Below the pieces are notes generated by a model. The model searched no databases and had not been told where the DNA came from. It saw nothing but the letters and a program-made list of their open reading frames with translations. Positions 2,607-36,590 of a stretch of DNA of 36,590 bases are shown here, in pieces (the stretch's first letter is position 1; every line of letters begins with the position of its first letter). Origin of the DNA: Lenisia limosa (Eukaryota > Protista > Breviatea); assembly GCA_001655205.1 (NCBI GenBank), contig LPNZ01007618.1, forward strand, positions 1 to 36,590, read 5' to 3'. Position numbers and translations under genes: made by a program.

Positions 2607-3443
2607 TTACTTGAAGCCAAGGTTTGTCAGGTCATCAAGAGGTGTCTGGAGGTCAAATAAGGGAAAGGGAAAATATAGAAATCCCCTTGAACGGAAAATC
2701 CCCAAATACAAATAAAAATACAAATAAAATAACTTGTTGTTATTCTCTTCGGGGCTATATATTCAAATATCACAAAAAAATAGTAACTGATAGAATTGTC
2801 TTACTCTGCTTGAATTATCGAAAGTTTCAGTTGGCGCGATCGTTTCGGAGTCACAGTCGTATAACGGATTGGCAGACGTAGAGGCCGCTGTTCCGGTGTA
2901 TAGTGCTGCGGTCGGAGGTAAGTTAAACAGGGAAAGTTTTCAAGACACCTCGGAGCCTAATATTTCATGCAATCTCGTTCACAAACTGTTTTGTGAAATA
3001 TTTCATGAGAGGAGAAGCACCAAGAAGCGGGAATCAAGAAATAGAATGTTGAGCGTGATGTTTTGCGAATAGTCAAAAGACCCACAGTTTTCCTTGTCAG
3101 CCCAGGTTTTGTCGTGTAGGCCTCGTCTGTACTTGTTGAACTCTCTTCTGCCTTGGTTGGCCTGGAACGCCTTGACACCTGCAATGGCTGCGGCTCCTGT
3201 GGGGGGTCAACTTAAAAAAGTGTCCAATGAAACAACGCACGTCTAAGAAGCGATCTTAATTAGTAAAATAAACAAAAACAAACAAAAACAATTAAGGCAC
3301 TATATCGGAGTGTAATAGGAATACAACGACACTTAATAATCCTTTTTGGGACAGGCTTCCGCCATACCGATTCCGGCAACACCAACGAGGGTAATGATTC
3401 CAGTTTGCACCGTTTCGGCTGGAAGTTCAATTGCAGCAGGCGT
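2607..3443 (-). CDS. Integrin beta transmembrane helix and cytoplasmic tail (4 exons)
   Basis: Exons 3443-3368, 3196-3086, 2905-2805, 2645-2607: GIITLVGVAGIGAAAIAGVKAF-QANQGRREFNKYRRGLHDKTWADKENSLYTGTAASTSANPLYDCDSETIAPTETFDNSSR-TPLDDLTNLGFK*. Confidence 0.85.
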
Positions 3444-6400
3444 CTGGAGGGGGATGAGAGGTGAAGGAAATGTCAATTATAAAAGGTAGTCAAGAAGGTT
3501 GGACCAAAGGGGCGATATATCATGAAGACATGTACATATCATATATTGATATTATCACACACTGACTAATAGTATAATATGATCATTATACATATCTATA
3601 TGATATGTACACGATGCCCCCAACATACGACGTAGCATTCAGTAGAGTCGGTATTGAGATCGGTCATTCGGGTGAGACACGGGTGGACCACAGGGGGGTC
3701 ATTGGTAGAGAAGCAGGTGCCGGTCTGGCATGCGTGAAGGCAATAAGAAACGAAGCAAAGGAACGAAAAATAAAACTTCAAGTTCGGTCAGGGTCACAGC
3801 AGGTATATAACAAGAAGAAGTGCGTAAATATCATGAAAGGTATGGTTTCCAAAGACACATGTGGGGATACATTTAGTGTCAATGACAGCTTTGCCAAAAC
3901 AATAACGAGGTGTGGGATATATAGAGAAATAAATGATGGAAAGAAAGCATCACAATGAATCATGAAAATTCATTTTCTCAAAATAAGTGAGACGATTTCT
4001 CAAATGACATTCCGCTATCCCACCTCGCCCGACACGGGGCACCAGGTGCAGCCTATGACGTCGTTATCGGTACAGGTGCTGCATTGGTCGATCTAAGGGG
4101 AGTCAATAGGGTGACAGGAACAGTCAAATGTGTCATGTTCACCATGACGGTGACCAGCAGGTATAATATCATTCAAACTAGTAAAAGAGTAATCAACCAG
4201 GGTACTGCATCACGAAAGCGATCAATATTTCACAATACTAACAACTTTGGTATCAAGCAAGTACTCAGCATCCTTTTGATCTATGCAATGACCAGATTAC
4301 AGGCATCACACAAGATATACAGACGTATTAAAATTTGTGGTTAACAGGCACCGTATCCCCTTATGATCCACGTTGCGTAATAAAGTACACATATCAAATC
4401 CATATTTAGAAAGTGACCGTATCAGTCAAGTCAAGCCGAAGCGTACCAGAGTACACGCATCAAGACAGGCCGCGGATCCACAAAGGCTGCAGTCGCCAAG
4501 CTGCCATCCATCACCACACTCACTACAGAATGTAAATAATGCAAATAATTAATTTACTACAGTGTAATATAAACAATCAACTCTTGTGAGGAATATAATG
4601 GAAGAGACTGTGACCCACCAGGTGCCGCATTCATTGCATTCACCTGAATAGTGAGGAATGGAAAAGTTTCAAAATAATTAAAAACACAAGAGGAGAAAAT
4701 CTGCCAAAATTAATCCAATATTCAACCTCCATGTCTCCATGTTGTAACTGCGCCCACATCATAAATAACATGTCACGGCATACTCATATTTTCCAGTTTC
4801 ACCACCATATACTGTATTCTCTGAGTAATAGTTGAAGTGAATGCCTACCATGTCCAGAACATGTTTTGCCATTAGGTCCAGTGGGGCAGGTTTGGCCGAA
4901 GTTGCAGTCACATGAATCACCACTCCAGCCATCATAGCAGTTGCTGAAGGAAATAAGTGTGACGTCAGGGATGAGCTTCAAGTTATTATATCAGATTTGG
5001 CCTTTAGTCACCATTATGGCGTCACTTCATTATTTTAAAAGACTGAATTGCTTAATATTTAAATGTACTTGTATATCCTCGAAAAGTATCGACATTTAAC
5101 TGGTGTTCTCTGAATCAGAATGAAGCCATTGTCACTGTCCCCAATCTTCTGGAGAGCACGAGCGTAACACGTGGATACTTTTGGTGATGGTGACCCCACT
5201 ATTGTTGTCCAAATCATTAGCAGTCGCTTACCAAGTTCCACAGTCACAAATGCCTGAGATACAGAGGGGGCATCCTGTTGAAGATCAAAGCGAAAAATGA
5301 CTCAAAAATATTCTTCACAACGTGTCTTCGCAATATTCATTTAAAACAATTCGGCTTCAACTTCCTCCACAAACCAGCAGTTGAGCAATTACATGAGGGG
5401 CCCTCCCATCCAGTGGCACAACGACTGCAGGCGGTTAACTCAGGAAAGCAATGCAATTGAATAATTATTAAAAGAGGAAAAATCGTAATACCATATCAAT
5501 ATCATTGTATACTATACAATGCAACCAGAGAAAGTATGTGGATTTGTGACACTTAAACCATGGATTCCAGGAGGATGTGGGTTGACATTCATGTTGAAGG
5601 AAGAAGTTGTTTTCGTGAATACTAACAAATGAATCAAGATAAAGCAACAAACACAACAACAAAAGAATGTGTGATCAGAAGAATAACTGAACCGAAGTTT
5701 CCAAAGTTCATAACAAGTCAGATATGAGTGATGCTTCAATTCGACCGAACCTGATCGACCACCGATTATGGCTGAGATCGATCCAATCCGGTCTCAGATC
5801 ATTTCGTAGTAAAGTGCTGAAATAAGACATACCATTCACCACATTCACAGGAGCCGGAAGCGCATGGCGGGTCACAGGTCAGTGCGTCGTTACACGAGCA
5901 GTCATCGGCAGTGAAACCCTAAATATTATCAGTATTGTTCAGATTAAGTTTTGGGCTAATGGAGAGTGATTAAACCCATTTCCAGATGCAGAAACAGAAT
6001 CATGTCTACAAGAACCAACATACCTCTTGGCAATCGCATTCTCCGCAAATACTAAAGAAATTAAACAAAAAACAAAATAAAACAAAAACGCTCCTTTGAA
6101 AACAACACAAAAACAAATAAGTCAACCAAAAGACGTTGTATACCATTCTCCATTGTTACTGCACTGATCACCGTTGTCGTTCTCCAGACACAGTTTCATT
6201 GAGCTGGATGGATTACTTTGTTGAAATATTATTGGGATACTATTTACAAAAACAATAGTAGCAACGCCACACATGAAAAACAATATATCAAAATGAAACA
6301 AAAACAGGATTTGATATATGACTTGATGGTAACTTGATTTTCACTATGCATCCACATATCCGATCAATCTCAGTCATAAACCCTAAGAAGTGTAGCCGAC

Positions 6401-9400
6401 CATTTACAGTCATCGCCTGAGAAACCTGTGGATGGATCGCACTGTAAGAAGTTATTGCAAGACAAGAATGGCAAAGCAAGAGGCCAAGGGATTTTGATGA
6501 TCTCGTTCATGCTACATTGTACACCAGTGATTCCTAAGAAAACAGCAAAACATGTGTTACACTGCCCCTTGTTGCGAAGAAATAATTGCCCTTCGCTCAC
6601 CTCACAAACGCCACATTTGCAAACTCCATTTGGAGAACAATCATGTTCACATGGGGTATCGGGGCAATTACAGGTGTCGCCAGAGTACCCACTTTCGCAT
6701 TCACTACAATATGAATTCAAAATAAAACTCAGGGAAATCAATATAAGCAATCTATTTTATTCAATAACAAGGATAAAATTCTTTAAACACGAAAAAAGTG
6801 AAGAATCAAAAGCAAACCAGATTCCACAGTTACAGGTGCCATGATCTGAGCAAATGGCAAGTTCTCCACTACATGCATCAGTTTCAGAATTCCCAACATA
6901 AGAAGGTGGACAGCCACCGTCATGGTGCAATTTTCAAACAAGTAAATAGAAGATGTGAATGAGTTAGGGCATATAGATGAAGTGGAAAATAACAAGACTC
7001 AAGAGGTCAAGAGATGACGTTATGAATCGGAGTGTTAAGATGCCAACAGATCATTGAAGTCTTCTTGGCATGGGTTCTTGGAACAGGTGCAGTCGTCTCC
7101 GGTCCAACCACTCGAGCACTGACATGTAGAACTGGGACAATAAATGAATGTAAACAAGCTGATGATCGTAAGTTAAAATAACACACGGTAAGAGGTGAGA
7201 GGTAATCCTAAATCTGCCGTCCTCCTCACCAAATACAGTCACCGCGACCGCCGCACGTTGCGTTGGCCGACCCGTCTTCTGTTTCAGCAACTGGGCAAAC
7301 ACCAACGGTCAGGCAGGAGCAATCTTCATTGGTATAGTCCGAGTCACACTGAGCAGTAAAATACACTTTAGGGGTTTTAGTGATGTGTCAACATTGTAAT
7401 GCCCGACATACATCACAAGAGCCGCAAATGCAAGATCCATGGCCTGAACATTCCAAGAGGCTGCCATCTGATTGAAGAGAGGACATGCATGCTGCCTTAG
7501 AACAATCGCACGTCGCACCGGAGTAGCCAGTGTCACAAGCACTGGGTGAAGTTATTAAATCAATTAAAGTAACTTGCAAAATTCCATCGAAATAATCAGG
7601 TGCACTTGAGAGATGAGTACACATGACTGGGTATTGAAACAGGAAAAATGTACAAATGGCCAATGTAATATGTCGAGAATTTATCAGAGCCAGCAAACAA
7701 AATGTGATGATTGATAATTACCACGAGCCCCCTCCACCTCCCTATACACAGTTTGTATCCCATTAAAAACTTCACTGAGCTTCACCCTTATTGTCTTCCA
7801 TCAAACATTTTTTCCTGGCTTTACACACCCCTACAAACCAGGTACCGCAGACGCAGGTGCCGTGATCGCCGCAAAGGCCGCCGTCACCAGGACATGGCTT
7901 GGCAATCTATGGTGGTTATTATGGCTTGGCAATAAATGATGCATTCTCCTTGATACTGATGTGCCACGTTGACAGATGGACCAGAAACGACCCCCTCACC
8001 TCGCAGGTACAGTCAGCAAGGCCGTAGCCGGTATCACATACACATTCGCCACATTCACAGCTGCCTTTCAAGTTGCTGGGGAGTATAAACTTAAGAAACA
8101 AAGTAAACGAAATGCAAAACAAACTCTGATGATGAGGAGTGTAAACTCAGGGAAGCCTATTATTAAGAAAAACAATAAAATCAAGAGTTGCTGGGGTAAA
8201 ATAACGAAACACTCTCAGATAGCAGCACACCAGAGAAAAAAAATAGAATGTCATCAAATACGAATGTGATAATTGACGTTTTTACTGAATCCTACCAAAT
8301 TCCGAGTTCACTTGAAGGGCATGGCAGACTTGAGCAATTGCTGGAGCCATGACAAAAGAACAATTTGATACAGATGTGTGATATTAATCCTCCCAGTTTC
8401 TTACCAAGCAGCACCCGCCCATCCGGAGATGCAGTCACATAATCTGAAGGAAATCAAACACNNNNNNNNNNNNNNNNNNNNNNNNNNNNNNNNNNNNNNN
8501 NNNNNNNNNNNNNNNNNNNNNNNNNNNNNNNNNNNNNNNNNNNNNNNNNNNNNNNNNNNNNNNNNNNNNNNNNNNNNNNNNNNNNNNNNNNNNNNNNNNN
8601 NNNCCTCCTTGACGTACCCGTTACATCCGCACGTTCCGCGTCCGCTGCATTCCTCAGTCATACCAGGCGAAGTTTGGCACGGCAGGCCTGAGGGGTGTAA
8701 ACTCAGGAAGTTTTGAATGAACGACAGTTACATCGGGGAAAATGAGCTACGTATGGAAGAACATGAGAATAAGAAGACGCAATTCCAAAGGGACAAAGCA
8801 ACAAGCAGCAGAGCAACAAAAGACTCAATATACATATAGCTATATATATCCGCCCTATTTCAATCTTGTATTTTTGAAGCGGAAGAAAACGGCAGCGTCA
8901 TACCCATAACGCAGTCACAGTCATTCTAAAATAATGAAATTAATGGAGACTACTGCGTAACAGTTGAACGACAGTTGATGGTTGTGAGTTAGGATGAGTA
9001 GTATAGTGAGTCTGATGCAACGGGAGTCTCGAGTATAAACTTGTTTTTATGACATAAGTGTTGACAGTGTCTTTCAAAGACACACTTGAATTTGGAGAGA
9101 ATTTAGTGATAACTAACCAAATGACAATATCATCATCTAAATTGTGATCGATATTACTCACGTTTGGCCCAAGGATATGAGGGTCGGTGCATTCGCAGCT
9201 GCCGCAGTTGCTAAGATGGTAACATAGATATGAACGATTTAAACCAAAAGATCACAGCCATCAATATTAGCTAGCGATGTTAGAGACATACCAAGTTCCC
9301 ATTCCCTGATCAGAGTTGCAGTTGTTGGGGCAGGTTGTTGATGAACAGTTACATGCGTCGCCCTTCCATCCCTGGGAATATCAATCTCAACACACAACAA

Positions 9401-12400
9401 AGCATAATCAGCGAAAAGCGACAAATGCCGATCAATTGACAATGTCGAAAGATATCAAAATAATACCATCAAATCACAGCACGTTGACTATTTCGTGCAT
9501 CATAAGATACCATAGAAACAGACACAGATACCAATGACGACATAATCCCCCAGGTCCGACCTGGAAACAGTCGCACTCTCCACAATTGCACACGCCTTGG
9601 CCGCTGCACTCCTTTCCATCAACTATCGGTGGTTAAAGATAGGAATGATTTTGAAGACAATGAAGAACAAAACAACAACAAAAAAAAAAACAGCAAATTC
9701 TAAAATTCTAGAGCGAATAATTTTGAGATCATTGAGATATGAAAATACGTGACTTCCGAAATGAAGTGAAAAAAAAAATCATATTTTACTCCCTACCTGT
9801 CGGACATGTCTTTGAAAGGTCACATTCACAGGCCGGTCCTGTCTTTCCTACGGGGCATTGGCAGGTACCGCAGACACTGGTGGAGTGATGAACGAATGGT
9901 ATTGATGCGGATGATATAAACCACATATAAAAACAACAACTAAAATACTCACACACACATAAAAAGAAACAAAAAAACTTCAAAATGGGTAGACAGGTAC
10001 CGCAAACTGGTGCTTTGAAATGACATCAAATATTAAACATCACAAATATGTCAGAGATCGGGCAAAATGAAATGATGGCGGCATCCGAATAAGCCAGAAA
10101 AGATTCTCACCAAGGATAGCCATCGCAGGAATCGCCAGATGTAGCAGTGGGGCACGGCAAAATAGAACATGAGCAGTCATCCTGGAAGAGTTAGGGGAAT
10201 CAGTAGCCAAAAATGAAATGGAAGAAAATCACTTCAATCAAGGAGGTAAAGGCAAAGGCAAACACACTGATGAGATCAAAAGCCACAACAATCCATTGAG
10301 CATAAACAGGAGCACGCAAGCAGACAGTGTAGAACGCGGGGTTACAGACGCAGACGCCACATTCACAGGTGCCTTGGCCGGAACCTGCGACGTCAATTTT
10401 TTGGAAAATAATGAATGGTTGTCAAAATAAATGACAGCCGCAATTGAGGTAATATGAGAAATAGTCTCATATATGGGAGCTACAGATTTCTTGTTACCCG
10501 AACCGACCACCCATTCACTTTCGTTTCATTGAAAAGAACCTACAGTCATTGGGACAAGTGAGGCTTGTATCACAATCGCAGGAATCACCGGTGAAAGGCA
10601 AAGTACAGTTGCAAGTTCCACTACACGTTGTCAATATGTAATAACAGCGTCATGGGTGTAAAAAAATAGGGATTACCCCAAGAATAATCACAAAAAAAAG
10701 AAAGAAGAAAAGCACTGTCATAATTAGACTCAATAATGATATCCAAAACATCACAGTAGAGAGCCTACCAGTCGCAGATACCTTGAGAGTTACAGGTGCC
10801 ATCTACAGTGAAAGGGCAAGACGCACATTCGCAATCATCGCCTTCGAATCCGGAGAAACAGTCACATTCTCCACCTGGGGATAGTAACCGACAAAATAAA
10901 ACGAGTGAACATCCTGGGAGTCGTAGATTCTATAACATCTCGACCCTTATTACAAAAGAAAAACAAATACAAAAATGCATTCTGAAACCAACAGTTTAAG
11001 TTTCCATTGCCGCTGCAGGTCTTCAGTGACGCCATGTAGCATGAACATGGACCGAGTGGGTTGGTAACATAGTCCGCTGAGGGATACGGGTACATCAGAA
11101 GAACAAGGGGTTTATGCGTCATCTAATCTGAATTCATGGCAAGACCCACCATCGCATTCACAGACGCCGCAATTGCAGTTTCCATGGTTGGAACAGATTT
11201 CGCCTGTCAAGGAATGGACTGGGCAGGCCGTGCAGTTGCATGGGCCTGTGCCGGGTACCTGGGAGGTTAGCAGAGAGTTAAACGGAATATGTGACAGTAT
11301 TTCATCGACAATAACAAGAACGTTGTAATGCGGTGAATCTCATATTTTGATAAAAATGGCTGATTAATCATGGAAGTCAACTTTCATTTAGAGCAGCCTA
11401 CAAGTTGGCTGAAACCAGGGTTGCATTGGCATTCACCTGGGGAAATAAATCAGTGAAACTATCACAACTGGCTGGTTCCAAAACACCAATAGGGGGAACA
11501 TAATACACATTATCTCCTAGGGGCCAACGTCTATCCCAGAGACGACTGTCATATCTCGTACGCTGTGTTCACCAAGTCATTGAATGGAATGTAATAACAC
11601 ACTCCAAGGAGATAACGGTATAATACATGGGGGGATTTCCATAAACCTCAAACGTAAATGGCGGGTTCATAAAAAAGGGGCATGTTATACTATGGATTTA
11701 CATTTACATAGAGGTATTCGCACTCACCNNNNNNNNNNNNNNNNNNNNNNNNNNNNNNNNNNNNNNNNNNNNNNNNNNNNNNNNNNNNNNNNNNNNNNNN
11801 GCCACATGGTTTGTCGGTTTTACAACTACAGTCAGATCCGCTGTAGCCCTAAACACATCAGGTTTAACCCGAATAAAGCAATGGAACGGAATCATAATGT
11901 AGTCACCCTGAACGTCTCGATCTGACCAGTCATCCCACCTCTGTACAGTAGCATCGCCCGCACCTAATAGAGCGTTAATCGTGACAATAAGAGGGAAAAA
12001 AAAGAAAAAAGCATCACACCACGGGGCAACAAACGGAAGACGTATTCAAAAGTACAAGGAGTGAACATACATGAAAATGAGGCTACAATTCTACCATCAC
12101 GGGACATCATATTACAGCATCCTAAGCCAGCCTACTCGCAGGTGCCGTGTCCAGCACAAGTCGGATCTTCGCATGTCACGCCCGCGCAGTTGCACGTGTA
12201 CTCAGTGTTGACGGTGACTGCGTGTGGGGGGGGGGNNNNNNNNNNNNNNNNNNNNNNNNNNNNNNNNNNNNNNNNNNNNNNCATCTCGCCCACTATCAAT
12301 TCTGCCGTATCCTGCGATGAGAAGAGAGATCGGAAGGCCATCGCCAAGTTCCGACCCCGGGGTGTTGAGGAGGGTCAGGTTAAACTGGACCGATAGATCG

Positions 12401-15400
12401 GGATCGTCAATTGGGTTATCCTGGGGGAGGTAAACCATGGAAAAGTAAAGCCAGGAAGTGAAGTGGGGAGTTCTGCAGGAAAGATTTTGGAAGTTTTTGA
12501 ACGATGCATTATTTGACAGACGTAGCTAACAGCATTAAAATATGAAGCAAACAACTAAGTTCATCTGGTGTCTCACTTGGAATCCTCCTGGGGGCTGAAT
12601 GCCATTAGGAGCAATAATGCCATGTACATCACTCGCAATTGACAGCCGGACATCATCAGCTACTGAGAGCATGCCTGACAAGGTGGTTAGAAGGGGAAAC
12701 GGGGAAAATACATATTGACAATATAGCGTGGATTTTGTCGAGACAACGACCGGAAGAATAGACAAGCACAGTATCGTTTTTAACCGAGGGATTCAGTAAT
12801 TATTATGCCCACCTTTGACAACACTCTCCACTAGGTTAGAACTGTCGCCTTCCAGAACGTTGACAAATCCGAAACCAAACTCATCAATGAGGGCTGAAGT
12901 CGGGTTAGTAGGAGAGTCGAAATATGGACCCCAGCTTTAAGCATGGGAACGATGTGTTTTGAAAGATATAAAACACACTGGAATGAACAGTTATGCACGC
13001 ATATACTTGAATGGTATCAGAGAACAACAAACGTTAACACATAGTATTATGTTGATATACTACCCCTTGTAGAAGGCATCAATCATACACCAACGGTTAA
13101 CATACAAACACACATGGTAACGCTCCAACAAGGATGAATGCATACTACCGCTACCAACCCTGGTAAGTTTCGAAATGGTTGGCAGTGACGGCGACGATGG
13201 GGAAGATGTTGTTCGTCACCAGTCCGGCCCGGGCCTGTCCCACGGAGGGGTAGTCTGACCCCATGCCAGGTGTGGCTCCTGTGGGGGTAAACTCAGGGAA
13301 TTAGTTGCAATTCGACCAAGTCAAGAAATGACACATACTATATAAATAGAATCAATAGAATAGATAATATGTGCCAAACATACCCTTGACGTTTGGTGGC
13401 GTGAGAGTGCCGTCATTGGGGTTATGAAGACCAGCTAGGTAGCCTTCGCCATATTGATGGTATGGAGCTTCACGAATAACGGGGAAAATAAAAATAAAAA
13501 CGATACTCCTCTTCAAATGGTTCACCATAAGAAAGTCGACAACCACTGACCAATATGGGAGTTGTGTTATATTGGGAAATTTCCACGTAAAATCGAAAAT
13601 GAGATGATTACTAACACTTAATCTGCGACCCCTAGGATATATTTTCAAGTCCAACCGTCGGTTGAGAGAAGGATGAGATGCCTTGACNNNNNNNNNNNNN
13701 NNNNNNNNNNNNNNNNNNNNNNNNNNNNNNNNNNNNNNNNNNNNNNNNNNNNNNNNNNNNNNNNNNNNNNNNNNNNNNNNNNNNNNNNNNNNNNNNNNNN
13801 NNNNNNNNNNNNNNNNNNNNNNNNNNNNNNNNNNNNNNNNNNNNNNNGAATTTCGTTGAGATAATCAATATTAAAAAAACTCCCCCATACCTCGGAAGCC
13901 ATAAGAAGAGCGGTCAGTTGGGACTCCGGAATATCACCGCCATTGTAGATTCTAAAATTGTCAGCTGAAGCAGAATTACTTTCTAAAAATCACTCGATTC
14001 ATCTCAATCTTCATCAAAATGAAGGTCCCAACCTCAGGTTATCGAACACTTCCTGGAGGAGCTCGGTGTTACTTGTAAGTGCCGAGTCAACTTGATACTC
14101 GTAATCTCCTTCAGTTTCTGAAAAGTAAAAATGAGTTACTTTTTGTCAGCATCATCACAAAAGAGAAGTAAACACTAGGATACAATCATTGTCAACCCAT
14201 TGCGGAAAGCAGAGTGTCAAAGTCAATGAACATCCTAACTGAGTGTAGATCCTTACCTGAACCAAACGGAGGGAACGGCTTATCGACAAACGAGGCGACG
14301 CCAAAAGTCGAATCATCCTGAATCGCCTTGACCGCGTTGATGAGCTAGACGTGGGATTAGAAAGGACAAACAAAGAATAAATCAGCGTGTTCCAAAACAC
14401 ACTCATTGGCTCATCATATGGTATTTTCATTGTTGCATTGATGTGTCCATTTCAGAGAATAATTTTGTGTTGATTGGTAAGTTTTATCAATCCCATCACC
14501 AACATCAGGAAGCACAGCTCTGAGAGTGATGATATCGTCATCAAATGAGGTGGACAGATCTTCAAGAACTAAACAGTCAAATACAAAAACAAATAATCTG
14601 AATATGGAACCAATATGACTAGTCATAACTACATCATGGCCATGAATTGTGAAGAAGTTCGAGCAACATTGCAGTGTACATGTCACGAGATATTCCAGGC
14701 ATCTTACTGAGGAGGTCAACCGGGGCCGGGCGGGCAGGCCAAACTGTGATAGGGATTTCGAGGGGATCTCCAGGTCTACGGATGAATTAGTCATTCGTGG
14801 TAACAATAAATATATAAGTTGAAAGCAAACAACCAGTATTGAAGATAGGATACAGTATTATTTTCGTACCGAAGGAACACATTGAGAGTTGTGGGGTGTA
14901 ACAGCGTATCCGCAGTTTCATCGTCAGTGGTTAGCACTTCACTAACTGGGAACTAAACAGGTGAGCCATTGTCTGTTTTCAAGTTGAAGATGAAATTGTA
15001 TTCAAAAAGCTGACGAACAAAATGCACATCAATCAAGAATGAGTGTCAAAATACTACATGTTTCCAAAAAGCCGGATATATGAGACGGATACTATCACGA
15101 AACGTGTGACTGACTACCATGAATCCCACCATCCAATCATCAACGCAAGGCTCCCCGAAAGGTCCGTCTTCGTTGCCTTGGCTGCATTTAGCTGGGTTAC
15201 TGCACCAGCCGCAGGTGGGCTGGAGACGGAGTAAACTTGAGAAGCAAAGCGAACGGAATGGAAAGTTCCAAGTCAAGTGTAAATCCGGGAAAGTTTAATG
15301 GAATACAGTGAAGCCAGGAAATGAACTACGATGGTGGAATCAATACCAAGGGGTATGTGTTAAATCTCATCAATATTGTTGATAGGGGCCCAAGTAAGTC

Positions 15401-25400: not shown

Positions 25401-28400
25401 ATGCCACTGAGATTTTCGGCAAATGGGAGCCCCAGGAAATCAGCGGTGGAGACACTTTCGGCTTTGGCGTTGCAGCTGTTCCGATGGATATCAACAAAAA
25501 CGGTTATTCTGACCTGGCAGTTGGGTCAGGACATCCGGATGATATTTACAAGGTTCGTAGGTCAATAGTCGGTCTTGGGGTTGTCATTTTCATCAAATCT
25601 ACTTTAACGATCAATCTTCTTTCATACCGTTGATAAACGGTCTTAACAATACTTTGACCACCATTGGCTGCCGTAAATTTAATGAAGTTCTGGTTCATGT
25701 ATCGTCGAAGTTCACATGGATAAACATGTTCATTTTGCTGTTTATAATGGAAACCACTCTTAGAAATACTTCTATATCGTCAAGAACCCTTGATCCGTAG
25801 CCCCTGGTCAATGCCTGCAGCATTTTAACGACTTTAGACAGTGCCTATTCCCGAACAAGACGTCATCTACATGAAGGCAGTCATCAGGGACTTCAATACG
25901 TATAGCACTCCGTCTGGCACACAACATCACGATTTCGAGGTAGCCATGGTGTTATGGGAGAGGGTCAGTCCAGATTTGGGTGGATGTATGTGTGCGTGTA
26001 TCTGTTTTTTCATCTACCTATGTAGTCTCATCGCGTTGTATTTCAGAGATAAACAAAAATATTGAGAATGGAGAGACTAGAGATTACAATGTTTACTTCT
26101 GCTGTTGCCAGATATTTCATTGAGAGTTGCTATGGGAATTTACCTGGCTTCCTTTATTGTTGTGTCTTGCCAAGTATCCAATCATCAGTTCGTGAAACTG
26201 ACACACTCTAGATGCCTTGGGGCGCGGTTGACTGCAGTAACGGCTTCCTCTATGGCATGATTCGAGTGGGCGGGTTGATATTATCTTGGCCTGATATGTT
26301 ATACCATTTCGCATTGGCGTGGTAGCCATGCCTTTTTTACGTGATCTTTCAATTATCTATACACGGCAGGCACAAATGAGATTCATGATATTTAAGTGTG
26401 GATATTTCCATTCTAGATTTTGTCACCACATGTGTGATTTACTTGGAAATCAAGAGGGTCAAGTCCGATTTTCAATCACAATAAACCCCAGACCTTTTTT
26501 CAGACTTTGATTATGACTCTCCAGGGTAGCGGCAGCCAAGACCAGTGCGGATGGGATAATTGCCAAAACGACGCAGATCCTGTGCAGGGACGTGCAGACT
26601 GCAAGTAGGCTCTCTGATACCCATTAAGGCAATTCGCCACACTACTATATGATCATATAGGTGAAAGTAGGAAACCATAGATAGTTGCTATCTGTCTGGG
26701 GTATTATTTTTGAAGCTGACAAAGTGATGCAATGCATATATCATGATATTGTGGATAGCATCTATTTTTCTTGATTTACTGTATCCTCACCCAATCAGTG
26801 TTTGCTGTATCCCCAATGGCAGTGGCGCCTACAAAGAGATCTACGCTTCAGGTTTTTCCGGCATGACTACCGGTCTCTTGCAGCCCAACCTTGGAAGCTG
26901 CCCGGGAAGACTGTGTCGAAAGGTGGGGAGGGGTCATGGGGAGAAAAAGACGAGAATCTGAGCTTTATCATGATTCATGTATGAACGCTATTCTATGCCA
27001 AAAATAGTCCCATGATTGAAGTGTCGATACAATAGTCTGCTCTTTTCTTGGACTAGTGGTTTTTTAGTGGCGCCTAGGGATGACTAGACGGGCCCGGGGG
27101 ATGCATGATTTGGCGTGACCGAAATGTTTGAGTTCTTATTTCCTTAGCCGAGTCTTGTCGAATGTGCTGGAGGCGAACCATGCTCCAAATGTTTCCACAC
27201 CCAGGAAATGTTTCAGTCTTGGTATGTTGGATGATAATGCTGATATTCTGCCTCTTGGCAACACATGTCTTCGATGACCAACATGTCTTTCTCATATTAT
27301 TCTGTTCATAAAATGTCGGAATTTAGTTTTTTGCGTCATCCCATCTATTTATGTCCTCACCTCCTACAGGTATCTTGATGACAACCAATGGGCCCGGAAC
27401 TCAACAGTCTATATTGAACTTACTCGCGACCCAACAGACACGCGCTACTTCGTTTTCAAAATGAAACCTTCCGTATGTTGTTACCTGACAGAGCTGGTCT
27501 TTTCATTTGGTCGCTGTTCCCTAGCTATCTGATTGCGTTACATCGCTACACTATCATATCGTATACTATGTGTGTCTTTCTCGACCATTTATTTGAGATT
27601 CCGCTTTAATTAGGACGTCACTTCGGTACGAAAAAAGACTTAAATTCATAAGTCCTCGATACATGTCGATATTTCACCGTCGTTTCGAACCGAATTATCC
27701 CCACTATTAATATGTCTTGACAATATGACCATTTAGCCTGGTAACGAAAATGCCCAGTTCTTTGCTGCCGACCACATGGTTGGTTCAATACCAGGAATGA
27801 TTGAAATACAGTCATCATTCGTTTAGTCCAATGTGGTTTGGTTTAATTGATATTTCTTTATTTTTCCACACAGTAAATTTCGTTCTTAACCCGATTTTAG
27901 GTCCAGGATCCTGACTATCTTGCGGGCGAATCTCTAGGATGGGGCGACGTTTATTCCATTTCCGGCACCAACCAGTGGGTTATTGAGACCTTCATATCAT
28001 GTGAGATCATCATGTTCATTCAGTTGAGAAAAATGCATCATCATCATACCATCATGCAAAGAGCAATCGTTGTAGCAGCTGCATTTCAACAGTAAAATTC
28101 GGCCTCACTGCCCGCTATATCTTGGATTATTTGGCATTAATGAATCCAGTAACTTCGGTTTCACCTCGGAAATCAATTCCGACTTCGTATATCGAGGTGG
28201 CGAGGAGTTCTTCTTCTCTGGAGGTTGGTTTTAAGATCATATCATCTCCAAACTCAATTATTTACTTTTATTGGTTCTATCAGATGGCTCCTCCGGGCAG
28301 TTAATTTTCATAATATGCGTTTTATGTTGTTTTTCGACTGGATGTTTGAAAATGTTATCATTTGCAAGAACAATTACTGTATGATCAAATAATGTCACTT

Positions 28401-31400
28401 CATCGCAACTTTTCGAAAGACCTAACCAATTATGTCTGATTCTTATTTCTCTGTAGATGACGATGTCTGGGTCTTTATCAACAACAAGGTATTCAGACTT
28501 GGTCTCAAAATACATTTGAACGACGGCCAATTGTCTGACTTGCTGTTATTTCCCCGTTTTTTTTGCCTGGCTTGTGAAGTTCATCCCCCCCCCCCNNNNN
28601 NNNNNNNNNNNNNNNNNNNNNNNNNNNNNNNNNNNNNNNNNNNNNNNNNNNNNNNNNNNNNNNNNNTATCACTTTGGACTCCATCAAAACTTCGGTACGG
28701 CAACCTGTTCATTTCTGTCCCCCCTTTCCCAGTCGCCTAACTATTTTGTAAAACGGGTCAAACACTTTCCCCGAACACTCCAGATTATCACAGTCTAACG
28801 TAATGTTAGTATTGGGGACAATGGTCCAGTTGCCACAAAATCTGACTTTTTTTAGCATTCTTTGGAAGTTGGGAAGCGCTACAATTTCGACATGTTCCAT
28901 GTAGGCTCCAGGAAATATACTCGTTATTACAACTTTGTTAATTGTTGTTTTTGTTTATTTTTATATCTTATCTATTCCATATGTGTCTCATCAACCCAGG
29001 CTGAACGACATACAACGGCCAGTAACTTCGAAATCACAACGTCCATTGAATTTGACACTCAGGTTGGTTGCGGAAATACCCCATGTTTTTCATAAACGTT
29101 GAAGGCCCATAATTATAATATTGATGATATTACATACAATTCTTTGTAATTTGTTTATTTTGCTTTGTTTCTGACCCCATCCAGGCGACGTTGGAGACGA
29201 TCAGTCGTCGCGGCCATCGAGTGATGTTGTCGCAGCCTTCACCAGAAGTCCCTCACCCTGAGGACTTGAAACTCGCACAGGATCGTGAGTTATAGTCTCG
29301 AGTTAATTGGTCTTGGTTTCATTTCAATATTAGTTTTGTTGATTATGTGTGTGTGTGTTACATTTCTCTTGATTTCGTTTTTGTTTTGATCGTATGGATC
29401 ATTCTTTGTAATTCCATTTCCCTTTACTTCATCTCACTCTCCAGCCGAATCCAAGCCTTCGCCCTTGTTATATTACGTTCCAAGACAGGATACGGATGTG
29501 AGCAGTTCTTGAGAGGTTTAATAATATTTGCGTTTTTCTTCATGAACATTTTAACGCAAGAACCTTATTTTGGACCTGATTGACTTTTCCGCAGATATCT
29601 CGCGACGACCACACCAACTCACGGAGTGTTGCTGAAGATGAAATGTCCCTTATTGATCGCCGTGATGCTGCGTCGTGTTCAGGCCTCTATGCTGACCATG
29701 CGTGTTACACATTCCATACCTTCCCGTCAACGCACAGCCAAGTATGCAAATGTGACTGTTTTAAATGTTACTCCATTATTGTTGTTATATTTCCATCACT
29801 CATGATCCCCATATTTAACATCGTTGTCTTGCGCAAATGTGGTATAACTCAGTTCAGGCGTATTTGTTATTTGATATCAACTGTCACCAATTTCGTCCAG
29901 GTTGTCGTCTTATGAACCACTTTTGTGTTATATGAATATCATATGATATAAAGTATGGCCCAATTCTTTCCCCATTCACAATGTAGTCTGAAGCAACCTG
30001 CCTCGGCATTGGCGGCCACTTGGCGTCCGTTCATTCAGCGGAACTTAACGCAGAACTCAAGGAATTGGTCGAATCCAAATTGTCACCTGGTTGGTCGTGG
30101 TGCATCGGCTGGTAGTTTTTCTACTTACTCTTGTTCGTGTTACTAGTGGCTGTGATTTAGTTCAATTTGACACGATCTGTGAGGAGAACCCCCAACCTTC
30201 CACCGTTGAAGTTGTCTCCACTGTACCTTTTAGCTTCCATTATTTTTGTTGATATTCTGTTTTGACCCCCTCAGGAGCGTGGGCACACATTGGGGCTTCC
30301 GACACAGTGTCTGAAGGCAACTTTGTTTGGACCGACTCCACCGCTTTTGACTTCGGAACTACCGATAATGTGGGAATGGATGATCATTGACAGTCTTTAT
30401 TTGACATCTGTTTATTTTTTTATTTTAAAATTGTGGGAGTATTGCTTCATTTTTTATTTGGATGTATTAACGTTTGTTTTCAAATTGTATTTTGAGTTGT
30501 GAATCCTCAATTCCCAATTATTTTTCAGGTCTACCCTTGGGAAGCCTTCGAACCGAATGACCTTTCAGGAGTATGCTGGACCTGTTTCATTGTTCTACTC
30601 TTCATATGCTACTTATGCTCAAGTACTTCTTGTTTATATTGCCGAAATGTTGTTCTTTCTAATTTTGATGATTTAATTTAATAATTTTGTTGGACTCCCT
30701 GTCCTACACAACAACTATATTGATAATGTTACCATATATGACCCGTTCAGTCCGAAGACTGTGTCGCCATCACCTCGCTTGGCTATTGGAAGGACGTTTC
30801 ATGCTCCATCGCGTCCAGCTTCATCTGTCGTGTTGCCTACGACTGCTCTGTGGTAAGTTACGGCAACTTTCAATTTATTCTGCTTCTTTTGTTTTCTTCG
30901 ATTCACATTGAACGGGCGACCTTCGAATCATTTTTAAGTGTTTTATCGGATACAAAGTATTGTCTTGGTGACTCGATCCACATGTATGCGATATATTTTT
31001 TGGTCGCTTCTTCTGTTTATTTAATATTCCAGGGTGGCTGTACAAATGGCATCTGCGAAGGTGACAACACATGCCTTTGTGCCAAAGGATTTATTGGGGA
31101 AAAGGTACGCGAGCAAAGAATAATCAGACGCGATAATATTATGATGTGTCTTTAAGCCAAATTCGTAAAATCTAGGATAATCAAGATTTAACGATTCCCA
31201 TTTTGTGTGATATTCATTTTTCCACCAACCTACTAATTATAAGTTGATCCCCATTTTGCAGTATTCCTTTTTTATCTCAAACCTACATATCATACGTTGA
31301 TTCCCGTTTAGTGCGATGTTCCCTGTGACGCAACCGGCGGTGTAGACAATGGAAAGGGAGAATGCGTGTGTAGAAACTGTTTCTTCGGTGACACTTGCTC

Positions 31401-34400
31401 TTCGACTTTGCCGGGTGAGTCCCATTCTCAAGATCCATTAACATGATGCAATATTTCAAAAACATACTTAAAATCCACCCATATCTAGGAGGTGTATTGA
31501 GTGGGGATGGTAGGTCAGGATTTTCATCGAAACAGGCTCGCCACGTCATCAGCTTCTACTTGAGATATTTTTTTTCGTCACAGAATGGTTTCTAATGCAC
31601 TTCAATCAACATGCCTAGAGATATTATGTTGAGCGTAGATGGATGACTCGCGTATCACCTTTGATTATGGAAATCGAAAGTTATTACTGGATACAAACAC
31701 CTTTCTCGATTCCTGTTTTCATTATTTATTACTCAAAGCTCACATAAACTAATTAGGAGTATTGCGGAGATAGTTCTAACTATCCTTGATAAATTTTTGA
31801 AAGTGAAAAATTCTGATGTCGGTCAGCCTGTCTGGGATCGACCCAAATTTTGGGCCACCTACTATTATATCCTTTTCATATTAATGACCCCCCTTAGTCG
31901 AAGATGACCCAACCTCATTGTGCACCGGACATGGAACCTGTGCTTCTTCAACTGGTACGGCTGTGCTTTACGTTAACAAAATAGTGATACTTTGTATCTC
32001 CATTGTCATTGTCACTCTCTTTCAATTCTATTCGGCACTTAGTTTGGTCTCGTTCTTGTTTCATCTCTTTAATGACTTTGGCATTGACCATTTCAGGACT
32101 CTGTAGCTGCTCCTCCAACTTCTTTGGCGATAGTTGTTCCGAATGCAAATCCGGATTCATTGGTCCTGACTGTCTCGAGGAATCGCAGTTTACCGGGTTT
32201 TTGACGGATAGTGTAATGGTGACCCCTCTTTCTCGAGCGGTTGACTTCGCCGATTTCAATCCGGTGGGTTCCTAACTTTCCGTCAAAAACTGTTCAGATG
32301 ATACTCTGTTTTCTTTATTTTTCTCGGAATTTTTTGTGTTTTGGCAGTCTGTATTGTTATCACATATTTCGCTATCATGATAATTCGACACTTGAACTGT
32401 TATTATTATCAGGCCGCCTTCCGCCTTTCGGCTGAGCTTCTGCCCGTATCGATGACCTCAGTGCTCCCTAAGGTCATTGTTGCCCTTGGTGGTGACTCTG
32501 ATAGTACTTTCCTTGGTGTTGCTCCAAATGGAATCTCATACATGGCTCAAGTCAAGCTTTCAGACGTGGGGGGTTGTGGCTGTCAGTTTGTCTGTCTTCC
32601 CAGCGTTTTTATGAACACTGTGAATTACTTCTCTTACGGTTCAGGGTTCTGTGGTGAAAATTGAGGCACTGAATAGTGTGACACTCAATACCTGGCAAAC
32701 GGTCGAGTAGGAGGGGTTTTTTTTTTGTATTTCCTGTTCTCTCTTCAGAATCAATACCAATCACATCATACTCCATTGCTATTTATGAATTTTTGATAAT
32801 GTGTCAGTTTTCGCTCTGACCTCTCCAGACTGGTCTTCGAAGATGATGTTCTGTCGATTCTCGTCAACAACACGGTTCTTGCCTACACTTCAGTGGAACT
32901 CGATGCGTCACCTGGTGCGTTGGGGTGAACCTTTGTTCATTCTTGTGTGGAACATTTTATATTAGTTCCCTTGTTATTGATATGTGAATATCTAGTGCTC
33001 TTCAAGTGGTAACAAGACGCCCAGTATTTGCATAATTTATTCACATAATGTGTAATAGTATCCTTTTTATTTTTGATATTTTAGTGTCCCTTGCTATTCA
33101 TGTTGGCGGAAATGGTGCGAGTTCAAACCCCCTGCCTGGAACTGTAAGCTTTGGAAACAAATTATGACAGAGATAAAAGGCAAAGGAAATGGGCATTTTT
33201 TGGCTTTGAATCATTCATTTCCTATTTTTTTTGTTTCCAGTAAATATTTCATAAGTTCTGCTGTTCCTTTCCTGATATTTTTTGATATTATGTTAAAAAC
33301 ATCGGTGCCCCCCACTCCCACCCCATTTGTGTGCCTTATTGACGCACCGTTCACCTACCACAGTTGACGAACGTTCTCGTGGCCTTGGACCATTCCGGCC
33401 CAGCAGCGTACCGCCTGCCGTCTTTCATTCAACCGGAAACTGCGGCCATCATCATGAAGTGGGAAGGGATCTCTTTGTTATGCATATGTAAGTATAAGTT
33501 AATGTATTCATATTGTTCAATCTACCTCGTTAAAACACAATGAGAAAAACATCTGTTAGTCTTATAAATGGTGTATTCAACCATTGTAATCATCTGGAAT
33601 GGATAACAGCAAAACTAAGTTATTGACATGAATTTAACTAACTTGTATTCATATCTGAGGTATCTTGCTTGTCTCCACATAGTTTAGTTTCATTATCTGA
33701 AGGTCTGGCGAAGAAATCTTTTTGTCACATGATTCAATTGGTCCAAAGGTGCCTCGAAATGGCGATTTCGTCATCACTGGAAAGGTCTGGGGAATTTATT
33801 GGGGGTCTTTCGATATCATACACCTTACGTTCCTTGTTATTGTATGTCACGTTTATGACGTAACGTTTGCTCCAGATGTCCGGGTTTTCAACGACTGCCG
33901 GCCTATTGCGTGAAGAGTACTTGGTGTCACTTAACAACCTTCCATCTCAGGTGGGCCTTTTCGGAGTCCCATTAGACAATGCAACTATTGGAAACATGTT
34001 CATGTCATTTCTGACATTTGTTAATTTTCATAGTTTTATCCTTTCTTGATCTGCAGGCTGTGGTTGGTTGCGTTTTTTTCATTACCATACTGACTCTGAG
34101 TTGAGTTGTTGTTTAACGTACATGTATTTACAATATTTGACTTCCAGTTCTCGTTTCGTTTTCATTTTATTTGTTTCTAAAGTTACCACCCCCAGGACTA
34201 TTATCTGACCAACACGCCCAAGACCTCCAGAATCGCGTCCAATATCAACATGAAGTAGGAACCTGGGACGTTTGATTGTTAATCAAACTCTTCATAAGGG
34301 ATACTAGCTCTGTTATTGTGTTGTAAGTTCTTCATCCGTTAACCCTCATCAGCGATCTCTACCAAGACGACCATTTCCTTCTGCGCTATCTCGGACAGAT

Positions 34401-36590
34401 CCGAGTGCACAGTACTGGTGGGCTGTTCTATCGATTGTTTTTGTTATTTATAAATTATTTAGCATACATTTGCTGAACCTGCTTCTTGTGTCGACTTCGC
34501 TTGTTTATGTTGTATTCATTTATTTTCATCTCATATTCATATTTTTATTCAGTTCAGTTGGCCATTGCTATCATATTTGAGCACATTATATTCTAAGAAA
34601 CCTTTTTCCTTCTCCTCTCCAGCTATATATTAACCCTCCAGTTGGCTCCACCTGTACCTTCATGTGCCAATAATATTTTCTTCTTCTCTTGGTTATTATC
34701 CACCAGTTGGCTACACCTGCACCTTCATGACGGCCTCGGACGACGGCAGTGACTTCTGGCTTGACGGCGTCAGAATTGTTGGCTTTATGGGAAGGGGGGT
34801 GCTGCATTATGTTGTTCTCTTGAGGAATGTGATCGGTTCTGTGTTTTCCATGTTTCCTCCATTTCATTAATCTTTATGTGACACACGACAGGTTGACAAT
34901 GACGGATTGCATGGCACTGTCACTGTTTGGTCCAGGTGGGAGCCCATATACCATCTATGATCGTTAATATGCTACTTTGATGATATATTTTGAGATTTGC
35001 TCCAAAATAGTATGGTGTTCTATCTATGAAATACTGTGGGACGATATCATATCGTAAAAGTATTAGGGGTGTTATATTTAATATTCCTTATTTTTGTGTG
35101 TATATTTCATCATTTACATAGCAATAGGGAATATATACCTTTTTTATTATTATATCTATGTGTCTATATTGCGTCACCATTACAGCTCCGTCTATGTGTC
35201 ACCAGGCCATCATGAAATTGCGGTTCACATGTTCGAGAAGGGTGGTGGAAACACACTCACTGTAGGTGGGATTCACTGAACTATCGGTGAACAACAGTAA
35301 CATTGCGGGGCGGATTTCACTGTCATCATTAACCGCAAATTGGAAATAATCCCGAGGGTGGTGGCTTTGGTGTTTGGTTCACTTGACATTTAATATTTTA
35401 TAGGTTCTGTTTTGTTTTTTTATTCATTTCTCGAGGTGTTGATCCTTTCAGGTGCAATATTCCTGTTCAGGTCTTGGTTCCGGCCTAATTCCAGATAGCT
35501 TCTTTTCCTACTCCGGTAAGTTAGAGACAACCTTTCTGACTGTATCGCGTTGGGCCCTGATGACTTTGTGTATTTCACACCTTCATTGGGAAGCGCCTTT
35601 GAACGGTTTACATTCTCGTCTCACAGTTAACTGTTCTGGCTCTCACAGTTTTGTCCAGTTATTTAACAGTATTGTTACTCAGAAACTTCCTTATTTGGTA
35701 TATAAATTAGAAACCTTCCTGTTGACCAACCAACTAACTCCCCACCCCCCAGTTGTCTCCGAGCGGCACCTCATCAAAACGCCTGCAGTGTCGATCACTT
35801 CCAACGCAGCCACTCTTGGTGCCCATTTCACTGATGTCCTTGGAACTGTGCATGATGTTGCGTCTAGTGTAGGCCTCGGAATTACGCTTTATTCCGTACT
35901 GATATGACACTTCAAGTGTTGTCAGATGGCCGTTCATCAGCCTTTCAGATTTCATGTTGTGAAATGCTGCATATTCTGCAGCATTTTCAGTCATTTTCCA
36001 TCACTAAACTGTAATACAGCTTGTTTATCACTCAAAAAAACCTACAATAACGATCTCAGGCCCCTGCTCTCGAGGACGAAATTTCTATCGAAGTCAGCAA
36101 AGTCGGAAATACGGTCACTGTCAAAAACCAGGGTGCCACGCTTTCCAGTAAAACCTTGACATCGACACTGGCCAGATCCATTGTAGGCGGTCAAGTATAA
36201 TTAAGACTGTTTATGGTACAAATCATTTATCTTTTTACGTTTTGTTTTTTTTTCACATGTTGTTATACATCTTCATCATATTTGACCACAGGACCCACCA
36301 AAAGTATGGTCTCTTTTATGNNNNNNNNNNNNNNNNNNNNNNNNNNNNNNNNNNNNNNNNNNNNNNNNNNNNNNNNNNNNNNNNNNNNNNNNNNNNNNNN
36401 NNNNNNNNNNNNNNNNNNNTCGGTAGGACCCGTCATATTTCGGTGTTGGCCAAGTCGGGTCTCTCTCAGATGTTGTAATCTATAACAGTGCAACCAAAAC
36501 TTGTAACGGTTGGGGGTGGGGGATTCAGGAATATCATTGATTGGATGAAAGAAAGTGTATTATTATTTTTTTTTGGGGGGGGGGGGTGTA
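16404..36590 (+). CDS. Integrin alpha-like FG-GAP mosaic protein, >60 exons, 3'-incomplete (SP-N domain-CTLD-7xFG-GAP-fibro-slime-CTLD-EGF-LamG-PA14-...)
   Basis: Starts MIIWQLSSFLCALFCLALLPFSTTA. Phase-consistent exons traced to 36194 (APALEDEISIEV...IVGGQ) and probably beyond. No stop, TM or GFFKR seen in the window, so alpha identity rests on the 7 FG-GAP repeats and adjacency to the beta gene. Confidence 0.82.
16923..16972 (+). repeat. Left terminal inverted repeat of the Tc1 element
   Basis: Near-perfect reverse complement of 18472-18519; differences are limited to a short central stretch. Confidence 0.9.
17070..18184 (-). pseudogene. Decayed Tc1-family transposase
   Basis: NGRPRTT, VMWTDESKFQLF..DGNARVWR, GGGRVLVWG, IFQQDNAPKHTAK, EWPAQSPDLNPIEHAW. 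In-frame TAG at 18058-18056, a frameshift near 17645 and apparent introns. The 5' end lies in an N gap. Confidence 0.88.
18472..18519 (-). repeat. Right terminal inverted repeat of the Tc1 element
   Basis: Reverse complement CATAAGTAATGGCAAAAAGTTTCTTCATAACTTTTCCTAAAATAGGTC matches 16923-16972. Confidence 0.9.
19833..21042 (+). CDS. C-type lectin domain 1 (N-terminal to the propeller)
   Basis: CPTGSDPCYIHITTAMTYNAAVEYCHSS|GWFLAMPSS..|SYIGL..WSWDT..WFNWDTGYP|(gap)VTIDSAGNWRDAGC|DASLPFTCE. Confidence 0.85.
21243..25552 (+). CDS. Seven FG-GAP repeats (integrin alpha beta-propeller)
   Basis: MGSAL..DVNGDGIEDLVVGA; FGYSL..DINGDGLDDLLVGSP; YGQAV..DISGNGLVDYFVSTP; FGRSL..DVTGDGVKDLIVGAP; FGF..(gap)..AVGAP; FGFSL..DFDKNGIPDLVVSAP; FGFGV..DINKNGYSDLAVGS. 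Confidence 0.9.
23144..23255. repeat. Degenerate (TA)n low-complexity tract in an intron
   Basis: TATATATGATATATAC... directly visible; similar shorter tracts near 560-612 and 3517-3607. Confidence 0.8.
25838..29062 (+). CDS. Fibro-slime / PA14-type domain
   Basis: AVIRDFN..HHDFE, WYLD, FFAAD, HNFGFTSEINSDFVYRGGEEFFFSGDDDVWVFINNK, YNFDMFHAERHTTASNFEITTS: the signature motifs of the fibro-slime family (Dictyostelium PsiA-like proteins and bacteria). Confidence 0.88.
29595..30852 (+). CDS. C-type lectin domain 2 with EPN motif
   Basis: CYTFH..SQ|SEATCLGIGGHLASVHSAELN|WAHIGASDTVSEGNFVWTD|WEAFEPNDLSG|SEDCVAI..YWKDVSC..FICR. Confidence 0.87.
31033..32263 (+). CDS. EGF / laminin-type EGF repeats
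   Basis: GGCTNGICEGDNTCLCAKGFIGEKC; GECVCRNCFFGDTC; CTGHGTCASSTGLCSCSSNFFGDSCSECKSGFIGPDC. Confidence 0.85.
32413..33460 (+). CDS. Laminin G / concanavalin-like domain
   Basis: AAFRLSAELLP..IVALG..LNTWQTVELVFEDDVLSILVNN..IHVGG resembles the LamG3 pattern (N.W.HV..V.D....LYVNG..L.IGG). Confidence 0.6.
33876..35515 (+). CDS. PA14 domain
   Basis: GLLREEY..SRIASNIN..DHFLLRYLGQIRVHST.GYTCTFMTASDDGSDFWLDGVRIVDNDGLHG..GHHEIAVHMFEKGGG..LIPDSFF. Confidence 0.88.

Follow-up and report, generated by a model that had tools for sequence, protein, structure and literature searches.

Integrins work only as alpha/beta pairs, and, to our knowledge, no one can yet say for organisms outside animals which alpha chain partners which beta chain, or how the balance between them is kept. 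A stretch of DNA from the breviate Lenisia limosa (GenBank assembly GCA_001655205.1, contig LPNZ01007618.1, all 36,590 nucleotides (nt) of which were analysed and are referred to as the window) poses this question in concrete form: a first-pass annotation had placed on it, 590 nt apart and reading away from each other, the start codons of an integrin beta-chain gene and of an alpha-like gene, each followed by a signal peptide. Do these genes form a real divergent pair from which both subunits of one receptor are made? The genes of animal integrins are at most loosely linked, as are ITGA2B and ITGB3 on human 17q21, and we know of no divergent alpha/beta pairs among them. Divergent pairs that code for both partners of one complex do occur elsewhere, namely histone H2A-H2B and COL4A1-COL4A2, and the Lenisia locus has the same layout, with the subunits of an obligate complex transcribed outward from a short region, although here shared regulation would have to be presumed. 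The data assembled below make it probable that the two integrin subunit genes of the locus are a genuine divergent pair and that a single region between them acts as a bidirectional promoter for the making of both subunits of a heterodimer. What is new is the paralogous pair, its gene arrangement, which is new for integrins, and the unusual, lectin-rich alpha chain, the protein families as such being already known; literature searches on head-to-head or divergent integrin genes found no report.

Transcripts and the region between the genes

The geometry that had been described is borne out. The beta start codon lies at 15813 on the minus strand (CAT at 15811-15813) and the alpha start codon at 16404 on the plus strand, leaving 590 nt in between (15814-16403), and the N-termini read from both, MRSFRLLDFVAIFLVVLPVVLGL and MIIWQLSSFLCALFCLALLPF, are hydrophobic and form the top Kyte-Doolittle window of their respective gene models. 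The DNA of the window is eukaryotic, rich in introns and interrupted by 12 N gaps. Its AT skew, positive between about 2 and 16 kb, turns negative at 16 kb and stays so to the end, keeping one sign along each gene; the flip at about 16 kb fits a minus-strand gene to the left and plus-strand transcription to the right. Only two public runs carry DNA of the locus, a metatranscriptome of polyadenylated (polyA) RNA (X1) and a second run (X2) whose type is not recorded; 93-98% of sampled words are present in X2, which has the behaviour of that study's DNA run. Within the region 15400-21399, X1 yields two contigs, both from one sample, with depths of 2 and 3.6. The first (454 nt) is spliced and joins 16032-16107, 15744-15855, 15539-15579 and an exon coding for PTCGWCSNPA (at 15219); the parts that it skips have CT..AC ends, that is, GT..AG introns on the minus strand. 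The second, unspliced, covers 16363-16544 and crosses the plus-strand start codon at 16404. No X1 contigs were seen in introns or further downstream within 15400-21399, so DNA carry-over is an unlikely source of this RNA. Both first exons, that of beta and that of alpha, are transcribed, in opposite directions and from 5' ends separated by less than 1 kb, and both are present in one polyA library (at low depth), which is the configuration by which bidirectional gene pairs are recognised.

The spliced contig also changes the dimensions of the region. The beta mRNA has a non-coding 5' exon at 16032-16107 on the minus strand, spliced to 15855 over a GT..AG intron (15856-16031, minus strand), and for this reason the transcript starts of beta and alpha are at most 255 nt apart and not 590. 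Of the shared 590-bp divergent promoter that had been proposed, the divergence stands, with both 5' exons in polyA RNA, but the size does not, since a beta exon lies inside it; the candidate bidirectional promoter, as bounded by the RNA contigs, is the region between the observed transcript ends, 16108-16362. This region of at most 255 nt would fire both ways, so that beta and alpha chains would be made together. Three tandem copies of GCACAGT (twice as CAGCACAGT) stand at 16190-16215, between both transcript starts, and account for three of the seven forward copies in 58.6 kb; they may be a factor-binding site. A contrary account accepts that the subunit genes are truly adjacent and holds that the adjacency is inherited history only, for example from a block copy, with no shared regulation and with chains that need not be partners. 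The evidence for co-expression does come from one low-depth sample, which leaves room for such an account; however, two independent promoters would hardly fit between starts at most 255 nt apart, adjacency by chance is very unlikely for two families with few members each, and integrins are, as is well established, obligate heterodimers. We regard mere inherited adjacency as rather unlikely.

Part of the promoter core is a short dispersed repeat ending at 16334. Two X2 DNA contigs track the window up to that position and then read ACTTTTCACGACAACTCG..., a sequence absent from the window. The sequence ending at 16334 could be a short dispersed repeat in the plain sense or a promoter element common to paralogous loci. 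The repeat bears on whether the head-to-head junction could have arisen in assembly, from a chimeric join at the short repeat at about 16,305-16,334 or from a false scaffold link over the transposon at 17.4-18.4 kb. Of the X2 contigs, the one from the beta side ends at 16315 and the one holding alpha exon 1 begins at 16305, and where the two that track the window to 16334 depart from it, depth is about 2.5 times that of a single copy, all of which such a join might produce. However, the window is without N between 13848 and 17361, the stretch shared exactly at the break is short, with contig ends within 16305-16334, and an independent contig from the European Nucleotide Archive (ENA ERZ3820729, NODE_79; 58,740 nt, here in pieces L001-L003) has 25,682 nt lying left of window position 25537 where the window has 25,536, which is what collinearity of the two up to the same end would predict. 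Elsewhere, NODE_79 supplies 48 nt for the gap at 28596-28666 and 90 nt for that at 36321-36419, their flanks being 100% identical, and a DNA contig with 194 letters spans the gap at 20605-20797. On the beta side, four gaps remain unfilled, and each is flanked on its two sides by stretches of one protein that follow on from each other on one strand; the X2 contig that ends at 16315 is 15,668 nt long, runs leftward past the 15400-21399 stretch and, if collinear, would span all four. We consider an artefactual junction very unlikely.

The minus-strand integrin beta gene

The minus-strand gene is a complete and genuine integrin beta, with a PSI domain, a betaI domain with intact metal sites, integrin EGF (I-EGF) modules, a transmembrane (TM) helix and NSLY/NPLY motifs. 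Its coding gene (2607-15855, minus strand) runs from the ATG at 15813 to a TAA stop at 2607-2609 over at least 55 exons, as read from a gene model whose first three splices are those of the RNA contig. Gene models were made with a small splice-aware gene finder trained on this locus, which recovers the three RNA-proven beta splices and, after retraining, also the RNA-proven unspliced alpha exon 1. The beta protein comprises about 1,316 modelled amino acids (aa) plus the residues hidden in the four assembly gaps. Behind the hydrophobic N-terminus come the PSI exons (15130-15579, minus strand), carrying CAEITRCDTCIHE and PTCGWCSNPAKC..., with splices confirmed by RNA and a weak Pfam PSI match (0.0078). 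Here and below, Pfam scans were made on single exons of 20-70 aa and have low power, many true domain exons being without a match.

The identification as beta, already made in the first-pass annotation, is carried by the ordered motifs, by Pfam Integrin_beta and by matches to beta chains alone in the Protein Data Bank (PDB). The betaI (VWA) exons occupy 12813-14776 on the minus strand and, by direct reading together with Pfam and PDB, hold DLSTS at the MIDAS (the adhesion site dependent on metal ions), SFDDD at the site adjacent to it (ADMIDAS), NGGDIPE at a place like the synergistic metal-binding site (SyMBS), LLSTD and DYPSVGQ. In order along the chain, the start of the hybrid domain is followed by ..APVDLLILEDLSTSFDDD.., with the DxSxS of the MIDAS and the ADMIDAS, then by FGVASFVDKP, NGGDIPE (the region of the SyMBS/MIDAS glutamate), a gap (13688-13847) that hides about 15 residues, HLILLSTD, NPNDG, DYPSVGQ..IFPIVAVT, LEGDSSN and the remainder of the hybrid domain. 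Pfam Integrin_beta matches two of these exons collinearly (4.5e-5 over model positions 180-212, and 0.06 over 32-58), and for the DYPS exon the PDB matches are integrin beta chains only. The I-EGF stalk (4447-12235, minus strand; 746 aa modelled) contains 156 cysteines, or about 20 modules, with 16 strict CxCxxCxC motifs and weak EGF_2/EGF_integrin matches. No beta-tail domain was found ahead of the membrane in the beta gene, and its place is taken by a membrane-proximal PSI-like module (3629-4092, minus strand; Pfam PSI, E=0.0016). The last segment (2607-3443, minus strand) holds the TM helix TGIITLVGVAGIGAAAIAGV and the cytoplasmic tail KAFQANQGRREFNKY...KTWADKENSLYTG...NPLY, identified by direct reading and with a Pfam Integrin_b_cyt match of only 0.22. 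The tail reads KAFQANQGRREFNKY..KTWADKENSLY..NPLY, also written KAFQANQGRREFNKYRRGLHDKTWADKENSLYTG..NPLY, and is followed by TAA; the QGRREF in it (window 3086-3196) compares with HDR(R/K)EF in animals. The tail exon gave no match in the PDB search, and the tail motifs rest on direct reading.

The plus-strand integrin alpha-type gene

The plus-strand gene, read as one gene, is integrin-alpha-like at both ends, with a propeller at one and a TM helix followed by KxGFFR at the other. The seven-blade FG-GAP propeller lies inside the window (21243-25552, plus strand) and is identified by the gene model, by Pfam FG-GAP matches and by PDB matches to integrin alpha chains. Calcium loops of the form DxDxDGxxD are visible in six blades (1-4, 6 and 7), the loop position of blade 5 coinciding with the gap at 23791-23881. 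For the exon of blades 6-7 (25334-25552, 73 aa), 50 of 52 PDB matches belong to integrin alpha chains, alpha6 (9.3e-13) ranking first; a second blade exon has weak PDB matches, mostly to integrin alpha chains, all with E >0.05. The alpha-like identity claimed for this gene is upheld, in the window by the propeller and beyond it by the TM helix and WKSGFFRKK, with legs that are non-canonical. The continuation is found on NODE_79, which was reached via the product of a spurious open reading frame (ORF), P0151, and which is 100% identical to window 25537-36590 before running on for about 22 kb more. On it the gene finder's model of the gene continues with an EGF module, some 11 DUF11-like modules, one leg exon of which passes the Pfam DUF11 cut-off (3e-5), and a TM helix, and ends in WKSGFFRKKK, an acidic tail and a stop (L003 3198-2531, minus strand of L003; gene finder and reading by eye). 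The final three exons read ..ETDDSFNW-NQAFGAGGGVFVVACVLWKSGFFR, KKKIPEREAGLEELDDVDFSDG and EIDDDIGDDDGWAL-stop, and the TM helix, which has a GxxxG run, is directly followed by the tail motif (AFGAGGGVFVVACVLW-KSGFFRKKK), 19.5 kb past the end of the window; this motif is the one that marks integrin alpha chains next to the membrane. Neither Pfam nor PDB matches the 24-aa TM exon, and TM-KxGFFR was read by eye. The first-pass annotation had named the lack of a TM helix downstream as the finding that would speak against a plus-strand integrin alpha; such a helix is present on NODE_79, provided that the 39.7 kb are one gene. As a side observation, the public gene calls on NODE_79 use genetic code 4 (TGA=Trp) and nearly always start at the first ATG, and yield spurious ORF 'proteins' such as P0151 and P0152.

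Whether the 39.7 kb are one gene is the point at which another account of the plus strand enters. In this account the plus strand holds at least two genes, a secreted lectin-propeller-PA14 protein beside beta and a separate downstream DUF11-TM-GFFR membrane protein, so that the gene next to beta would be something other than an integrin alpha. X1 holds no RNA across the alpha gene body (word share 0.00 for 21000-30999), so the single 39.7-kb transcript is a model; further, the model, of about 3,450 aa in about 130 exons over about 39.7 kb, contains several tiny, low-scoring bridging exons, and there is an exon-free stretch of 1.2 kb with a repeat at L001 12881-14063. However, at a gene penalty of -15 the gene finder picks no in-frame stop/ATG boundary and predicts one gene, with no stop before the exon that follows NQAFGAGGGVFVVACVLWKSGFFR (KKKIPEREAG...), while a penalty of -5 adds one tiny split, inside a PA14 domain and judged spurious, and a penalty of 0 several more tiny splits, the 3' end being unchanged at all three settings. 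The DUF11 repeat pattern carries on across the 1.2-kb intron; it would be odd to find a GFFR tail on a protein lacking a propeller, or a propeller on one lacking an anchor; and published breviate ITGAs unite propeller and GFFKR in single transcripts of more than 3,300 aa. We give a two-gene plus strand little credence. Most likely, the plus-strand gene is transcribed as one unit and translated into one giant chain, as the gene model predicts.

On this single-gene model, the alpha chain would consist, in order, of a signal peptide, a C-type-lectin-like module, the seven-blade propeller, PA14, C-type-lectin-like, EGF and LamG-like modules, about 11 DUF11-like (Ig-fold) leg modules, the TM helix and KxGFFR. 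Exon 1 (16363-16574, plus strand; X1 RNA and gene model) comprises the 5' untranslated region, the ATG at 16404 and the signal peptide, and ends at a GTATGT donor at 16575; a 36-nt intron that the first model had placed inside it was rejected, the RNA contig being continuous there. All candidate exons up to 18631 are of phase 0, so that exon 1 is in frame with those downstream. An early intron holds a fragment of a Tc1/mariner transposase (17372-18184, minus strand; Pfam HTH_Tnp_Tc3_2, E=7.7e-15 on the ORF 17504-18055), around which DNA depth is uneven, from 0 to about 200; this fragment accounts for the uneven depth and for the scaffold gaps that flank it (17362-17371 and 18185-18355), and the exons predicted within 17372-18184 were rejected as lying inside it. 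The N-terminal region between exon 1 and the first lectin-like domain is without an assigned domain. That domain, a C-type-lectin-like domain (CTLD) ahead of the propeller (19833-21042, plus strand), was recognised by motif, with no Pfam match on single exons. Past the propeller, also on the plus strand, lies a fibro-slime/PA14-like module with a cysteine-rich insert (25838-29062; IRDF..HHDFE ... GDDDVWVFINNKLALDLGGLH), read from its motifs, with no significant Pfam match; its in-frame core exon (LALDLGGLH..) is restored by the 48 nt with which NODE_79 fills the gap at 28596-28666. The second C-type lectin domain (29595-30852) matches Pfam Lectin_C (1.4e-4) and, in the PDB, C-type lectins only; in 30529-30852 it keeps EPN and has WKD where calcium- and sugar-binding lectins have WND, which makes carbohydrate binding by this domain uncertain. 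EGF-like modules (31033-32263; Pfam EGF_laminin 2.4e-4 and others), a LamG/ConA-like module (32413-33458; sequence pattern only, no Pfam match) and a second PA14-like module (33703-35515; weak Pfam PA14, 0.16, and motif reading) follow, and further alpha exons (35789-36590) lead out of the window and on to NODE_79. Two further observations concern the surroundings of these exons. A dispersed repeat of about 650 nt occurs at window 24300-24944 and at L001 13497-14128 as inverted copies of 86% identity, both in alpha introns; it led the gene finder to tiny false exons, and those predicted within 24300-24944 were rejected. In addition, about 760 nt past the alpha stop another gene in the plus orientation is predicted (L003 ~1770, minus strand), beginning MDSGRRGSTSSTGSNAAQ....

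Several observations weigh against a divergent pair of integrin subunit genes as proposed here. At the protein level, a glycine in the beta tail replaces the clasp aspartate that, in animals, forms a salt bridge with the arginine of alpha GFFKR. The propeller blades are not diagnostic, as bacterial FG-GAP proteins score as well: the nearest Atlas clusters to the propeller are all bacterial FG-GAP proteins, and in a library of 1.84 billion proteins the 73-aa propeller exon matches multi-propeller proteins with 14-27 matched stretches, taken as bacterial from a library that carries no taxonomy, with no integrin alpha orthologues among the matches and with TM+GFFKR in 0 of the top 150 representative matches. 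The canonical thigh, calf-1 and calf-2 domains were not found, no scanned exon having an Integrin_alpha2-type match. At the level of the locus, RNA coverage is very shallow and is absent over the alpha gene body, positions 16315-16335, in part a repeat, are not bridged by any short-read contig listed, and alpha exon 1 is joined to the rest of alpha only across the two scaffold gaps around the transposon. Likeness to bacterial FG-GAP or 'integrin alpha family' propeller proteins lies in the blade sequence; unlike these, the gene here is intron-rich and eukaryotic, stands beside an integrin beta gene and, on the single-gene model, ends in a TM helix and a GFFKR-like motif.

Breviate integrins and partner choice

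The two chains share with animal integrins (alphaIIb-beta3, alpha6, alphaV) a propeller and a betaI domain, the three metal-site motifs of beta, single TM helices, KxGFF(K)R, NxxY and an RREF..KW core. They differ in that beta has about 20 I-EGF modules and not 4, a PSI-like module in the place of the beta-tail domain and glycine for the clasp aspartate, and in that alpha is without thigh and calf domains, carries lectin, PA14, EGF and LamG modules and has calcium loops in nearly all blades. As a receptor, beta and alpha would pair through propeller and betaI and through their TM helices, both of which have small-xxx-small motifs; the NxxY motifs of the beta tail would connect to talin-type adaptors, and the lectin-type modules of alpha would add or replace ligand contacts.

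Breviate integrins described earlier (Kang et al., bioRxiv 10.1101/2020.04.29.069435) include an ITGA of 3,312 aa and an ITGB of 1,793 aa in Pygsuia biforma and an ITGA of 3,346 aa, LenisMan47, in Lenisia limosa itself; the ITGAs are single transcripts with DUF11/Ig-like legs and GFFKR, and the breviate ITGBs are reported to be without the clasp-Asp motif (Kang et al., bioRxiv 10.1101/2020.04.29.069435). The pair described here resembles them in its giant alpha chain with DUF11/Ig-like legs and a GFFKR-type motif and in a beta chain with an expanded cysteine-rich stalk and NPxY. LenisMan47 may be this very alpha gene, as its motif spacing from 310 to 701 equals that of blades 1-7 here, if exon 1 splices straight to 18631. 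In the Lenisia ITGB tabulated by Kang et al., the MIDAS lies at 130/132/134, the ADMIDAS is of the form S-x-x-N-D and the tail has RFNAAMKE, compared with 121/123/125, SFDDD and GRREFNKY here; judged by these motifs, the present beta is a different paralogue. In the text and the available supplements of that study, gene order, a head-to-head layout and lectin domains are never mentioned, and the sole mention of PA14 is of an ORF next to the Mastigamoeba ITGB (bioRxiv 10.1101/2020.04.29.069435). The ITGA of Thecamonas trahens (2,114 aa, Ig-like repeats and Laminin_G3, GFFKR; Kang et al. suppl. table 1, bioRxiv 10.1101/2020.04.29.069435) is likewise a non-animal alpha with an extra lectin-fold module in the leg and a GFFKR-type motif. 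However, the Lenisia chain has many more inserted modules (two CTLD, two PA14 and EGFs), with one CTLD ahead of the propeller.

A broader scenario, speculative and in our judgement distinctly unlikely as a whole, is that breviate alpha and beta genes were kept and duplicated as head-to-head cassettes on one short bidirectional promoter, so that position would name cognate partners. The layout might then be ancestral and pre-animal, and the present pair would be a 'lectin integrin' that binds glycans, for example those of prey or of bacterial epibionts. Bacterial epibionts are known for Lenisia. Whether this was the original arrangement is a question that gene order can answer in Thecamonas, Capsaspora, other breviates and Amoebozoa. 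As read from its sequence, the alpha chain suggests that a long insert of modules of the carbohydrate-binding type can stand between an integrin head and tail, a hint at non-matrix ligands in a unicellular organism. A tight divergent alpha/beta pair would provide a direct and testable guess at which chains are partners, and a simple mechanism by which their expression may be kept in balance.

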